Source: Salpingoeca rosetta (lineage: Eukaryota > Protista > Choanoflagellata). From it: a DNA stretch of 64,000 nt. The stretch lies in NCBI GenBank assembly GCA_033442325.1, contig JAWQFM010000003.1, positions 2,310,385 to 2,374,384 of the forward strand, read 5' to 3'. Of this stretch, positions 23,101 through 28,905 are shown piece after piece. Numbering within the stretch: position 1 is the first letter of the stretch; each line of letters starts with the position of its first letter. Below the pieces are notes generated by a model. It searched no databases. It saw nothing but the letters and a program-made list of their open reading frames with translations, and was not told where the DNA came from. The position numbers and the translations under genes were made by a program.

Positions 23101-26100
23101 CGCTGTCCACGGTTGGTGGAAACACGACACGCGATTGGCTCGTGCCGTAGTTGAACGCAGCGACCTTCACATTCTGCTGCTCAATGATAAAAGATGAGTT
23201 GGCCGGCAGCGCGCGGGAAATGCTGCCCAGCGCCGTTGCAAACGCAGACGGTAGCGACGCAGACGAGCCGCTCTGTTGTCGCAACCACATGGCGGTGCAC
23301 GGCAGTGCGTGAGAGAAGCACACATTCAGATGTTTGGCGCGTGGGTTGTGTGTGTATGTGTGTGTTTGAGTTAGGGAGCGAGACATGCAAAGGCTCAAGT
23401 TTGGGAAACATACACGCACAAGCACGCATGCGTCGCTCACTTCACTCATTTTCGCTCTTTATCGCACCTCAGCTCAAATTCACAAATACACACACACACA
23501 CACACACACACACACACACGAACAAACGCAAACAAAGCGCAAACACAACATACAATGGCACTTACACTGGTGATGTTGGCTTCAGCAGATTTGAGGGCTG
23601 CACTCGGCGCAGCAAGCATGTTGCTGATTGTCGATGTCAGACTCGTGGTGATGTTCCTCACGCTCTCCTCGGAGAGCGACGCGTTCAGCACGCGGCTCAC
23701 AGACCCAATCACGTTCACAACCGCCTTGACATCCTCAGCGCCCATAAACTCTGTTGTTGTCGTCTCCTGGCTCAGGCTCGTTGCCACCTGCGCAACGTTC
23801 GTCGGGCTCAACGCCTCCGTCGCCAGCTCCAACAGGCGGTCGTTCCTGCACGCGGTGCTGTTGACGGCTCCAAGCACATTCAGCTTCGTGCATGTGCGCG
23901 TCGCAACAAGCGGGCGGGAGGTTGATGGACACTGCACACTCGACACCGCGTTGCAGCCAACAACCGCGGGCCACGTCACCCCGTTAAGGACTTCGCTTGG
24001 GCAGCTGCACTTGGACTTCTTGGGCGCAGTGGTGGTCGTCGGCACGGGCGTGGTGGTCGTGGTGGCAACAGCGGCAACGCTGCTGCTTGGAGGTCCGCTG
24101 CCTATTGCCGTGTGTGCCTTCACCTGCACAGTGTACGCGTACCCCGCACGCAGGTTCGCCAGCGTGTACGATGGTGAAGTGGAGTGATGCGCAGCACCAA
24201 CGCACTTGCCGCTCACACACGCGTCAAATGCGGTCGTGCTGTCGCTGTCGTCGCACGGCAGCCCGTCGGGCTCGTCCACTGGGGTGCAGACGCCAAATAG
24301 GCAGGTGTTCTCGGCAGCGCATTCCAACTCGGCGCATTGCACGTTGTCACAGAGATCAAACGCATCTGCCGTCTGGTAAAACACCTCAATGTTGCTCAGG
24401 GAAATGTTGCTGTCGCCAGCAAGCCACGTGTTTGTGTATGCGCCCGTGGTGATGCTGAAAGAGTCCACGGTTGCTGTCCCTGTTTGGCAGTCTGCGCCCA
24501 GCACCAAATCGTCCCCTTTCAATGTGTGCAATGTTGAATGTGTTGTGCATGTGTGCGTTGCATGTATGTTTGTACGTGTGTATGTATGTGTGTGTGTGTT
24601 TGGTGAGGCAGGTGGAGATGGCACAGGGCACACATAGTGACTGTACCACATTATGCATTCTCACCTCAACTCAAACCGCAAGTGCTTGAGTGAGCACACA
24701 GACACACAGACGAACACACACACACACACACACAGAGGCACACCCTCATACTTATACATAAACACAAACACACATGCACACACGCAACACACGCTCGCCC
24801 TTTCTCCTTTGCCGCACCAAACGAAGGGCACAACGACGACTCCGTGCGAATTGCGGCGGTGCCTTCCTGCAACTGCGTGTCTGTTCGGTATGCGCTGCCG
24901 TTGACAATGGTGAAGAGAAACGCGTATGGATCAAGCTGGTACGTATCGCCACTCGCGCTCCACGACAGTGACGTGAACCCGCCAAACACGCGACCTGTCC
25001 TGGTGTGCCTGGCTACGACAAGCGTCACACCCTTGTCGTCACACTGCGCGTGGAATGTTGCAGCGCTGAATCCGTGAGCACTTCCAGAGTAGCAGCGGTG
25101 GAAATAGCGGTTTGGAAGCAGCGCCGAGAGCGCCTTGTTGTTACTGTCGTCCAGGATGGCAGAGCCGACAACGAGAGAAGGCGATCCAAATGCTGACGGA
25201 AAGTACACGTTGTCGCTCAGAATCGGGTAGCAGTGTACGGTGGTGCTGTTGCCGCTGCTCACGCAAATGTCCCGTCCTTGGAACGAGGTGGTGTAGATGG
25301 GGTGGGGCACGGTAAACTTGAGGTTGTCGTAAGCGCCCGAACTCAGGTCATACCTGGTAGCATAAGCAATGGCAGCGAAAGCAATAATGTGAGTATAGGT
25401 TGCACTTTGGTGCATGAGACTGTGGGATATCGGGTACAACCAAAACCACCAACAAGCATTCAGAGACGTATTCACGTAAACACACGCACACACACATGTA
25501 TCTACAGACACAGCGAACACATGTGTCCACACACACACACACACACACACACACACACAAAACACACGACATACATGCACACAAAACACACGACATACAT
25601 GCACACAAACAACCACACATGACACATACATGACACACACAGGCACCACGATCGCTTGCGCAACCGCACCTGTAGAATGTGTTGTCGAGAGCATCACCAC
25701 GATAGAGCTTGCCGTTGATGGCCACAAGACCACCGAGAAGAAATCCAAATGCGTCTCCACCAGCACCACTCAGCTGTAGGGTTTGTTGCAGCGAGCCATC
25801 GACTGCGCTCAGGACGTACACGATGTCTCCAGCCACGCCCATGGCATACACGCTCGCGCCGTCAGCTGTGACGCCACCAACACCACTTGGCATCGCGTAG
25901 GACCACACAAGCTCGTGATCCGGCCACGTCGCCTTGAGAATCTGCGTGTTTGACGCAAGGTAGTAGGTCTCTGACGCAAAGTCGCTCCACAGCTGCACAA
26001 CACAGCCCGCAAAGGCAACTGGCGTGAAGGATCCAAGAACATCCCCATGAACGTTCATGCGTTGTACGGTTGTTCCGCAGTACCCAGGATACCTGTGCAG

Positions 26101-28905
26101 TGTAGACGAGAATCGAAGAATAGAGGTGAGCAAACGGTAGGTGTGTGAGTGCGTGTGTGTGTGTGTGTGTGTGTGTGTGTGTGTGTGTGTGTGTGTGTGT
26201 GTGTGTGTGTGTGTGTGTGTGTGTGTGTGTGTGTGTGTGTGTGTGTGTGTGTGTGTGTGTGTGTGTGCTTGTGTGGGTCGCTTGAAAAAGCATGTACACG
26301 CCCGCTACGTGCACGGGTACGTGGTGTGAACGCTGGACGTGACATTGTCATGCACCCACCGCAGCCATCAGTTACAGTGCAAGACAACTCTTTACACACA
26401 CACACACACACACACACACACACACACACACACACACACACACACACACACACACACACACACACCAGAATTCGTTTGCCCACGGGTTGAAGCCGCCGCC
26501 AACAACACTTGTCCGTGCTTGCAAGGTGTGAGTGGTGGAGGCATCCACGATGTCCAAGAGGTGCGGCGTTTCATCTGCTGTCCAGATGTTGTGCGAGATG
26601 ACCTGCGGCGTGTGTTTGTTTTACACATGTGCGTGTTTGTGTGGTAATGCATACGCAGTGGATAAGTGGTGGTGGGAGTGGTGGTCACAATAAACACTTG
26701 CTGGTGAGATCCAACGACAGGTGCGTCCTGATCAACACGATGGTACAAGCACGCATAGTGCGCAAAGTACGACGCCTCAGGTCCCAGATTTCATGCTCAT
26801 GCTCCTCAAAGGAGCACCAGCGTGGGTCTCAAACCAACAACGAAGAACTCTTCGCAAGCACACACACAGACACAGACGAATACACAGACGAACACACTCA
26901 CCTGATAGCAGAAGATATTTGCGTCAAAGTCAGACGTGACACAAATGTCACGACCGGTAAACGACACGGAAGGGATGAGCGTGTTCACGTCTGTGCGCAG
27001 GATGAAGCCGTCAAACACGCCATCAGCGAGGTTGTATCGATACAGGGCTCTCCCCGACGCAAGATAGAGCTTGTCACGGACGACGGCGAGGAGACCCGAG
27101 TTGAGTTGGCTGTAGAAGGTTGCCACGTCGCTCACGATGCCGCCCGAGAGAAAGATAATTCCCAATACAAGCTTATCGGCCTTGCGCATCACAACAACTT
27201 GAGTGCTGTTGGCCTTCATGTAGTACACGTTGGTGTCGTCTGCTGCGATGCCGCGAACCGCAACGCCGCTTATCCTCCACGCCTCCTCCAACGATGGATA
27301 CGGCCCTCGCCGCACGAATGCACCGGCATCGGGCTCAGCCGTGAAGAACTCAGCCGTGTCAAACTCACCCCACAGCTGTCGCGGCCACGACAGCGACGTG
27401 TTTGTCAGCGCAATCTCGCCCCTGTGTGCACCGTCACGCGCAAAGCGATGAATCTTGTCTGCCTTCAAGCCATCCAACAGCCAGAACTCGTTGAGGTGCG
27501 GCATGAATCCGCCCCCACCCATCGTGGAGAAGGGAGCAATGCTGGTCTGCCGCGCAACGGGCTGCTCGGTCACGTGCACGCCAACCCCCCTCCCAACACA
27601 AACACCGTCAATGCAACGGTCATGGATGGTGCTGCTGTCGCCGTCATCGCACGCCGCGTAGTTTGGCTTGTCCGTGTACATGCATTCGCCAAACGAGCAA
27701 GTGGGTGTCTCCTGACACGGTCCGGCGGGTGCGCAGGTGTTTGTCTCACAGCCATCGCCCACCACCGTCTCATGGATACTGTAGCCGATAATCTCGCCGT
27801 TGCTGCCTGGTGTTGATACGTCCATCTCGTTCCATGACAGCTCCATCGTGCTCGTGGACACGCTGTTGATTGTGAGACCGGTCGGTGCGGCGTCAGGAAC
27901 GTCTTCGCGCGTGGTGCCCAACTTGGCTGCGGAGGAGATGCTGCGGGCGCCCTCCAACCCCACAGCATACACCCGCACCTTGTACGTCGTGGCGGGCTGC
28001 AGCGCCGTGATGACGTGTTCAAACACCTCCTCGTCACCACTGGTCTCCAACGCCCAAGTGACCTGCACCTGCGCACTCACAATTGGCCCAGACCCAGACA
28101 CTGTTGGTGTTGCCGTGATGTCGAAGGCGCGGATGGGCGTGGCGCTGAACCACAGATCTGCTGGCACTGTCCACGACACAAGGAGGGCGTCGGAGGCTTG
28201 CGGGTATGTTGTTGGGTCCTCGGGTGGCAGTGCAACACCGACGGAGCGCGGCTGCCCGCTGGGGACGGTGAACGCTGGGTTAACCTGGATGGTGGCGTCT
28301 GGTCCCATGCCCAGTGTCGTATTGATAGCCACGGCGATGTTGTGGGAGACAAAAGGCACCGTCAGCGCGCTTGGCAGCGCGTAGTCGCTCGTATCAGTGT
28401 CCGCATTCAAAACCGCGACGTCGAAGGTTGCCTGGCCGTATGCCCAGGTGGTTGGCTGCGGTGCCAGCGGTTGCACGTGCACCACAAAGCCCGTGATGAT
28501 GACGTTTTCTGGCAGCGTGCCCCAGGACAACAAGATGAAAGGTGACCCAGCGAGGTTTGTCCAACTGGCACCGAGGCCGGAAAGGGTCGGCTTAAGTCGT
28601 GTGCGTGTGTGTTTGCGTGTGAGTGCGTGTGCGTGTGAGTGAGTATGGGGAGGGACGTCATGTCACATCAGCGGGAGGATGAATCACCAAGAGACTGCTC
28701 TCCATGTCTTGGATATGGAAGCCAATCCAAGACCATGACACGTTCATCGAGAAAAGGCAGACTTTAACCGATTCAGCGTGAAGAACTAGAACAGGGAATG
28801 CACAACACATACCAGCTCAAGGACCCGCCGATTCCTGTCGTGAGCAGCATTGACGTGTGTTAAGCTGCACACGCAGGTCACAAACCAGGAGATGCAAAGA
28901 AACAT
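20190..28905 (-). CDS. Adhesion-class GPCR: SP - FN3 - FN3 - split FN3 [Cys-rich, 2x propeller-like, TLDc, Cys-rich] - Thr/Pro linker - HRM-like - GAIN/GPS - 7TM
   Basis: GPS motif CVFWQF...WQGTGC...CECTHL/TNFATL. Secretin/adhesion-type 7TM motifs (ITMHLCINL, CTAVAASLHYFLLTSFTWMLIEGIHLY, YGVPALIV, CWL...IWAFIAP, MGITWVFG, YLFAILNAFQGLFIFVFHC). FN3 motifs (LLVSWTVP, ITALQPATTYKVRVYAV). TLDc motifs (HGFSAATFHAQCDDKGVTLVV, VFGGFTSLSW, AFLFTI, PSFG, IEVFY). The first exon (ATG 28905, MFLCISWFVTCVCSLTHVNA) is tentative. Confidence 0.92.
22635..22808. repeat. Intronic (CAA/CAG)n tract with TTAA interruptions
   Basis: Lies in aGPCR intron 22540-22828; reads (GTT)n with GTTTAAG units on the sense strand. 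Confidence 0.85.

Follow-up and report, generated by a model that had tools for sequence, protein, structure and literature searches.

An adhesion GPCR of Salpingoeca rosetta with a probably discontinuous third FN3 domain

Can an FN3 domain in the extracellular part of a G protein-coupled receptor of the adhesion family (aGPCR) be interrupted by a large block of folded modules and still form one domain? This question is raised by the gene PTSG_09376 of the choanoflagellate Salpingoeca rosetta, which lies in a stretch of 64,000 nucleotides (assembly GCA_033442325.1, contig JAWQFM010000003.1, positions 2,310,385 to 2,374,384). This whole stretch is hereafter called the window, and coordinates are counted from its first letter. 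An original prediction, made from the letters alone, described an aGPCR whose third FN3 domain (FN3-3) is split by a symmetric cassette of about 760 amino acids (aa) and is completed directly before a Thr/Pro linker and an HRM-GAIN region. It proposed that the ectodomain is branched, and suggested RNA-seq, AlphaFold modeling, joining of the two halves in silico and a search of other choanoflagellates as checks. Based on profile searches, structure prediction and RNA data, we consider it probable (about 0.85) that PTSG_09376 is an aGPCR whose third FN3 is a discontinuous domain.

The protein (XP_004989632.1, UniProt F2UMG0), annotated as hypothetical, consists of 1894 aa and was retrieved by a profile search with the exon that carries the first FN3-3 half. 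When the annotated protein was mapped exon by exon onto the window, its coding region was located at 20193..29309 on the minus strand, with 13 coding exons and a coding sequence (CDS) of 5685 nt.

A third FN3 domain in two parts

Both halves of FN3-3 were found on the minus strand where they had been predicted. The N half (aa 293-339; 27757..27897) comprises strands A-B-C and matches positions 2-35 of the 84-position Pfam fn3 profile (19.5 bits, E 0.0011). The C half (aa 1097-1136; 24076..24195), which consists of a short C'-like strand and strands E-F-G, matches the complementary positions 48-78 (27.7 bits, E 3e-6). Between them, 757 aa (aa 340-1096) are inserted in frame, in good agreement with the predicted length.

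The same nested order, that is, N half, Cys-rich module (CYS), one or two propellers (PROP), TLDc, CYS and C half, is present in three S. rosetta paralogs, PTSG_09826 (two cassettes), PTSG_13098 and PTSG_06573. It was also recovered in Microstomoeca roanoka, whose protein EP00043_P020559 is a Trinity transcript product of 4500 aa with three cassettes in one open reading frame (ORF). PTSG_13098 is a near-identical partial copy of PTSG_09826, and both are 41-42% identical to aa 293-1136 of PTSG_09376; PTSG_06573 is 39% identical across the aligned cassette region. In all three paralogs, the N-terminus is collinear with that of PTSG_09376 and reads FN3, FN3, split FN3. Fragments of uncultured marine relatives on a Tara Oceans scaffold (L002) and on a Joint Genome Institute metagenome contig (L001) have the same nested order as well, in L001 within a single intron-less ORF whose source annotation is "sugar lactone lactonase YvrE". 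At least six further S. rosetta loci (contigs C31, C34, C14, C30, C17 and C35) encode TLDc, CYS and the FN3 C half, several of them with two cassettes 4-5 kb apart, and no 7tm_2 match was found on the same strand near these six other loci. A homolog search limited to proteins of similar length returned S. rosetta paralogs only.

Within this family, GPS and the seven-transmembrane (7TM) domain occur in PTSG_09376 only, and the FN3 halves are never unpaired in complete proteins. These comparisons show that the FN3 and its insert form an evolutionary unit, which paralogs, another species and relatives from the environment have in common. The nested module is family-wide and not special to PTSG_09376, which acquired it by domain shuffling. 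In a tree of the TLDc-CYS-C-half segment, PTSG_09376 grouped with those cassettes of PTSG_06573 and M. roanoka that have two propellers; support for this grouping was weak (79-86), and it was not relied on.

Two of the annotated paralogs, PTSG_13098 (aa 994-1031) and PTSG_09826 (aa 900-955), have an incomplete first cassette, from which a different piece is missing in each. The second Cys-rich module and part of the FN3 C half are absent from one, and the greater part of TLDc is absent from the other. Errors of annotation or assembly seem to be the cause in both.

Joining of the halves was evaluated with an in-house FN3 hidden Markov model (HMM) of 95 positions, for which 16 intact FN3s from these proteins were used and which was seeded with a canonical FN3 of the M. 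roanoka protein. It replaced an earlier version whose seed, the divergent second FN3 of PTSG_09376, had collected 7 domains only. As the original prediction had anticipated, the joined halves of PTSG_09376 were recognized as a single domain across positions 1-95, with 41.2 bits. The same was observed in all eight complete cassettes (41-56 bits), and shuffling the C half as a control reduced the score to that of the N half. Chance does not account for the split, because N half, cassette and C half follow each other in the same order in all eight complete cassettes.

Multiple alignment of the joined halves with intact FN3s revealed that only 10-13 columns of the C' region are absent, indicating that the C-C' connection has been replaced by the insert. 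Residues of the FN3 core are retained in both halves, including the aromatic residue of strand B, G..Y of strand C a Leu in the E-F region, Y..V.A of strand F and G.GP.S of strand G. This conservation extends to both sheets, whereas overall identity is about 35-40%.

The assignment of PTSG_09376 to the aGPCRs was confirmed by Pfam matches to both GPS and 7tm_2. The 7TM domain (aa 1532-1768; 20858..22308, minus strand, several exons) was recognized by its hydrophobic segments and by a 7tm_2 match over positions 3-250 of 250 (E 4.7e-42). GPS (aa 1473-1519; 22345..22485, minus strand; E 1.7e-9) contains the motif CECTHL|TNFATL, in which the cleavage consensus His-Leu|Thr is followed by TNFATL and a cleavage site is predicted. 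Thus, a secretin-family 7TM is present, and a GPS with HL|T and a predicted tethered-agonist stalk stands directly before the first transmembrane segment, as is characteristic of class B2. By sequence, the GPS stretch matches the solved chains of ADGRD1, ADGRL3 and ADGRB2, and the matches to the upstream GAIN domain cover its GPS part. A signal or anchor segment was found at aa 12-40, and no transmembrane segment precedes aa 1531, which implies that everything up to GPS is extracellular. The number of Cys residues is even in each module of the cassette.

Probable closure of the halves and alternative explanations

We next asked the models whether the two halves would pack together. AlphaFold2 modeling of aa 288-1140, based on 13 aligned sequences, resulted in a mean predicted local distance difference test score (pLDDT) of 77.3 and a predicted template modeling score (pTM) of just 0.40. 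The model contains FN3-like strands in both halves. In the N half these are located at model residues 14-17, 23-26 and 43-52 (ten-residue blocks with pLDDT 85, 87, 60 and 82), and in the C half at residues 812-814, 818-821, 829-837, 842-845 and 849-852 (pLDDT 77-84); pLDDT is about 80-87 in most blocks of the two halves. In the FN3 topology, C' and F are the only partners of strand C, and strand B has A and E as its partners. The modeled strands C (10 residues) and F (9 residues), together with B and E (4 residues each), are what a closed domain would give.

In a two-chain prediction, in which the halves were offered as separate chains, a score of 0.37 was obtained versus 0.03 for the best of three controls (controls, 0.00-0.03), and this score is rated weak. 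Of 78 solved complexes, 51 attain the mark used for such predictions, as do 2 of 108 mismatched pairs; at or below 0.60, there are just 5 of the 78 solved complexes, together with all 4 mismatches that passed. Contacts agreed to at least 99% in these runs, and the pLDDT of the partner was at least 72. Considering the joined score, the conserved core residues and the AlphaFold2 strands, we infer that the halves of FN3-3 close into one FN3.

Several points weigh against a closed, discontinuous FN3-3. With 19.5 bits, the N half by itself does not reach the Pfam cut-off of 25, although this is expected for half a domain. The two-chain models give weak support for the packing of the halves, and the profiles and models together support this packing indirectly. 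With a pTM of 0.40, the model does not fix how the domains, and with them the double neck proposed below, are placed relative to each other. In addition, RNA reads cover the first boundary of the cassette, and the second boundary (24196) and introns 2-4 rest on annotation and frame continuity.

One alternative is that the FN3 halves stay open, either as remnants of two former FN3s or as beta-segments packed on the Cys-rich modules. The ectodomain would then be linear, in the order FN3, FN3, remnant, CYS, PROP, PROP, TLDc, CYS, remnant, linker and GAIN. The low two-chain score, the pTM of the whole region and the sub-threshold N half are all compatible with such an arrangement, as is the fact that the packing of the halves was not observed directly. 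On the other hand, the halves complement each other exactly along the profile in all eight cassettes, unpaired halves are absent from complete proteins, and the core residues of both FN3 sheets are conserved. The long C and F strands (pLDDT about 80) have no partner inside their own half, and the controls of the two-chain prediction reached only 0.00-0.03. We therefore regard open halves as improbable.

A second possibility is a three-dimensional domain swap, in which the N half of one chain is complemented by the C half of another and the split FN3 serves as an oligomerization device. An insert of 757 aa removes the entropic advantage of intrachain closure, and the two-chain prediction lends weak support to an association of the halves as separate chains. 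However, nothing points to oligomers, proteins with two or three cassettes would form uncontrolled networks, and the homologous Cys-rich modules that flank the insert offer a simple route to intrachain closure. This explanation appears even less probable than open halves.

To evaluate the gene model, RNA evidence for the first boundary between FN3-3 and the cassette was collected over window positions 26276-28670 from one stranded raw RNA run (X21) and from contigs of three further studies. The exon 28591..26902 is covered evenly and without a break by both sources. At position 27757, where the N half meets the Cys-rich module, RNA depth in run X21 is about 24-32, and neither the reads of this run nor the contigs of the three studies contain a joint or a loose end. 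The intron at 26901..26603 (GT..AG on the minus strand) is removed in RNA, so that 26902 joins 26602 in phase 0. Thus, the RNA-seq check bore out the spliced model for the read-through at 27757 and for the first intron.

An RNA contig of 5969 nt extends beyond the region 26276-28670 on both sides, by 277 nt upstream and by about 3870 nt downstream. Its length fits the 5685-nt CDS plus untranslated regions and does not fit a message without the cassette (about 3.7 kb). Farther downstream, the end of TLDc, the second Cys-rich module, the FN3-3 C half, the linker and the HRM-like module are encoded by one exon in one open frame. For introns 2-4, the annotated splicing is identical to the GT..AG sites found by hand, except for one glycine at intron 4. 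Convincing splice signals were found at neither boundary between an FN3 half and the cassette. A cassette-skipping isoform, considered as a candidate at the first boundary, was ruled out by the absence of these signals and of any joint or loose end at 27757.

Taken together, these data support the view that PTSG_09376 is one gene with one mRNA, in which the cassette lies in frame between complementary FN3 halves. That the gene model is an artefact, with a functional mRNA in which the cassette is left out and FN3-3 becomes an ordinary FN3, or with the cassette on a separate transcript, is hardly credible: the dependence of the second boundary and introns 2-4 on annotation leaves it some room, but besides the uninterrupted reads, the 5969-nt contig and the poor splice signals, 10 presumed RNA runs (X4-X13) contained a fraction of 0.71-0.79 of the sampled words, the estimated exon fraction being about 0.72 with the cassette exons versus about 0.28 without them, and the M. 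roanoka transcript carries three cassettes in one ORF.

Two minor observations were made in the RNA data for this region. In the propeller-1 exon, reads of opposite orientation are present at window positions 27236-27555 in the stranded run, at a depth of 1-4. At position 26972, G>A was seen in 4 of 26 reads of X21 and in no contig run; an allele, an error or editing are all possible.

The cassette and a possible side arm

Pfam and in-house HMMs confirmed the predicted order of modules, namely CYS1 (aa 338-396), PROP1 (aa 399-625), PROP2 (aa 625-855), TLDc (aa 858-1038) and CYS2 (aa 1041-1098). On the minus strand of the window, the first Cys-rich module (CYS1, aa 340-396, 8 Cys) is located at 27586..27756, and the first beta-propeller (PROP1, aa 397-624) at 26902..27585. 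They are followed by the second beta-propeller (PROP2, aa 625-856; 25218..26602, three exons), by TLDc (aa 858-1038; 24370..25214, two exons), and by the second Cys-rich module (CYS2, aa 1041-1096, 8 Cys; 24196..24363), which shares its exon with the FN3-3 C half. CYS1 and CYS2 are homologous (42% identity, E 5e-12), and the cassette had been called symmetric; this description holds for the two flanking Cys-rich modules and not beyond them. PROP1 and PROP2 are 31% identical to each other (E 5e-19).

The Cys-rich module (55 aa, 8 Cys) shows weak matches to Pfam DUF7107 (E 0.28 and 1.6) and is repeated up to 63 times in other proteins. One of these, protein P0009, which matches query positions 69-103 (the module occupying 48-103), contains Dicty_CTDC (1e-93). 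Judged from such sequence matches, the module appears to be related to the Dictyostelium Cys-rich repeat. TLDc was identified by a nearly full-length match to Pfam TLD (PF07534; aa 874-1035, profile positions 4-167 of 170, E 2e-18). Known TLDc proteins, such as OXR1, NCOA7 and TBC1D24, are intracellular, and the presence of TLDc in the extracellular part of a GPCR is unusual.

No Pfam family was matched by the propeller region of PTSG_09376 (aa 395-860). The propellers of relatives have weak PQQ_2 matches, and that of the M. roanoka protein reaches the cut-off. Modeled alone, PROP2 was predicted with high confidence (AlphaFold2 pLDDT 90, pTM 0.87) as 20 strands forming five blades, in agreement with the propeller-like fold that had been read from the sequence. 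Its best fold match is the glutaminyl cyclase 3mbr (Z 21.5, root-mean-square deviation 3.0 over 210 residues), followed by 3nok (Z 20.4), Escherichia coli YjiK (Z 18.6) and olfactomedin chains (Z 15.4-15.6). Foldseek aligned PROP2 with glutaminyl cyclase over the full length at a template modeling score of 0.70-0.73, and sequence identity to the glutaminyl cyclases is 10-11%. These models suggest that the propellers share the fold of plant/bacterial-type glutaminyl cyclases, as the same fold only and not as members of that family. An olfactomedin identity was also considered and rejected, because no olfactomedin sequence match was found in aa 395-860 and the fold match is below that of the glutaminyl cyclases. 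When the whole-region model was submitted to Foldseek, the matches were tandem propellers and ectodomains with FN3s plus propellers, such as ROS1/Sevenless.

The original prediction of a branched ectodomain is supported by the conserved position of the cassette, in frame between complementary halves, and is conditional on the closure of FN3-3. Closure of the halves would make the ectodomain branch immediately above GAIN, and such a branched form is very probable. CYS1 and CYS2 would then run next to each other and form a double neck, at which the two ends of the insert meet. In FN3 domains, the C-C' loop is at the same end as the C-terminus. For this reason, the propellers and TLDc are placed as a side arm leaving the C-terminal, membrane-facing pole of FN3-3, where they would stand right above the linker and GAIN.

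It is tempting to speculate that this arm is the main ligand-binding head, that engaging or pulling it would load the path through FN3-3, linker and GAIN, and that the load might expose the tethered agonist (TNFATL...) and so activate the 7TM domain. Since the cassette is tied to strand C and to C'/E, a pull or a ligand-induced movement might peel or open FN3-3 at low force, and an opened FN3-3 would alter tension or geometry on the linker and GAIN. Gating by a side arm would allow the receptor to tell arm-bound ligands from ligands at the tip formed by FN3-1 and FN3-2. In a variant in which the halves complement each other between molecules, ligand binding would be coupled to receptor clustering. 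That the split FN3 has a working role in either way, and is more than a frozen accident, is an attractive but unlikely proposal at present.

Split FN3s and multi-domain inserts in small domains are already known. In the insulin receptor, the insert sits in the C-C' loop of FnIII-2; it comprises about 120 residues, is largely disordered, and contains a furin site and alpha-CT. FnIII-2 has been described as "internally spliced" by the insert domain (PMC10560217). Like FN3-3 of PTSG_09376, FnIII-2 of the insulin receptor and IGF-1R is a discontinuous FN3 of a receptor ectodomain, which the chain leaves after the first strands, in the C-C' region, and reenters to finish. However, the insulin receptor is a tyrosine kinase, whereas PTSG_09376 is a GPCR whose 757-residue insert contains five folded modules.

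Split PH domains provide a further parallel: PLC-gamma carries SH2-SH2-SH3 inside a PH domain, and syntrophin carries PDZ inside one. Here, too, a small beta-sandwich is interrupted by one or more folded domains and still closes, but these proteins are cytosolic, the folds are different and the inserts are much shorter. Latrophilins (ADGRL; Lec-Olf-HRM-GAIN-7TM) are aGPCRs with a five-bladed propeller in the N-terminal fragment, and the GPS/7TM part of PTSG_09376 has ADGRL3 as one of its best matches. They differ in their linear domain order, in the olfactomedin type of the propeller and in having HRM, for which PTSG_09376 has no Pfam match. ROS1/Sevenless contains nine FN3s and three six-bladed YWTD propellers and was described as a chain of whole domains, with no mention of a domain that is inserted, split or interrupted (PMC11743138). 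It resembles PTSG_09376 as a large receptor ectodomain built of FN3s and beta-propellers, and Foldseek ranked it near the top when searched with the model of the whole region.

Relatives of PTSG_09376 are comparable as well. PTSG_09826, PTSG_13098, PTSG_06573 and the M. roanoka protein likewise have a split FN3 around CYS, one or two propellers, TLDc and CYS, but they lack GPS and 7tm_2, have further FN3s after the split one and carry one to three cassettes; a single transmembrane segment forms the end of the M. roanoka protein. In the literature searched, which included the choanoflagellate GPCR catalogue and a 2026 aGPCR review, we found neither a nested insert in any aGPCR ectodomain nor a folded insert of 757 residues in an FN3. 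Nothing relevant was found there on split or nested FN3s or on extracellular TLDc, and PTSG_09376 is named in none of these texts. The words "nested", "inserted into", "TLDc" and "branched" are all absent from the 2026 review. The aGPCR Cupidon, which is the subject of a preprint, is encoded by another gene, PTSG_03655, and has an EGF/ConA/TSP1 architecture.

aGPCRs are thought to sense ligands and force through a linear extracellular string that ends in GAIN. PTSG_09376 would be a natural branched case, with a five-module arm of 757 residues rooted in an FN3 directly above the linker and GAIN. As S. rosetta is genetically tractable, this case bears on where force must act to activate an aGPCR. 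With regard to domain insertion, it suggests that an FN3 of about 90 residues tolerates an insert eight times its size, and that the FN3 and its insert duplicate and shuffle as a unit.

Origin of the receptor and other features of the gene

Two divergent FN3 domains precede the split one on the minus strand. FN3-1 (aa 80-161; 28291..28536) matches positions 14-93 of the 95-position in-house HMM (18.5 bits), and FN3-2 (aa 183-277; 27943..28227) matches Pfam fn3 at positions 2-75 of 84 (whole-protein E 2.1e-17). Downstream of FN3-3, the predicted Thr/Pro linker is present and is followed by a module with six Cys (together aa 1137-1215; 23839..24075, minus strand, read from sequence), and GPS and 7TM come farther downstream. 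The HRM part of the original prediction was not confirmed, as Pfam HRM gave no match in aa 1150-1225 even at E<=10. The HRM-like module, which has 6 Cys and one Trp, is conserved in a further paralog, PTSG_06956.

PTSG_06956 is an aGPCR of 1077 aa encoded near position 1110000 on contig C15 of the same genome. It has the same linker, HRM-like module, GAIN/GPS and 7TM as PTSG_09376, and the two proteins are 50% identical over 744 aligned residues, from aa 1130 of PTSG_09376 (the end of strand G) to the C-terminus. Their N-termini are unlike: no FN3, Cys-rich module, propeller or TLDc was detected in the 284-aa N-terminus of PTSG_06956, and PTSG_09376 is collinear in its N-terminal 1136 residues with the corresponding parts of PTSG_09826 and PTSG_06573. 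The high identity from aa 1130 onward, combined with the unlike N-terminus, indicates that PTSG_09376 is a domain shuffle. A block of FN3, FN3 and split FN3 has been joined to an existing linker/GAIN/7TM chassis of the PTSG_06956 type, and the pair thus presents two different N-terminal blocks on one signaling chassis. Domain shuffling has been proposed for choanoflagellate aGPCRs (PMC12716839), and this paralog pair is a concrete example of it.

Finally, the locus contains long perfect or near-perfect microsatellites at 22634-22805, 26141-26275, 26394-26465 and 29685-29810, which are (AAC)57, (GT)n or (AC)n repeats of 36-67 units; a (GT)n repeat is located at 26153-26267. The three microsatellites within PTSG_09376 are intronic, two of them abut splice sites, and the fourth, at 29685-29810, is found upstream of the coding region.

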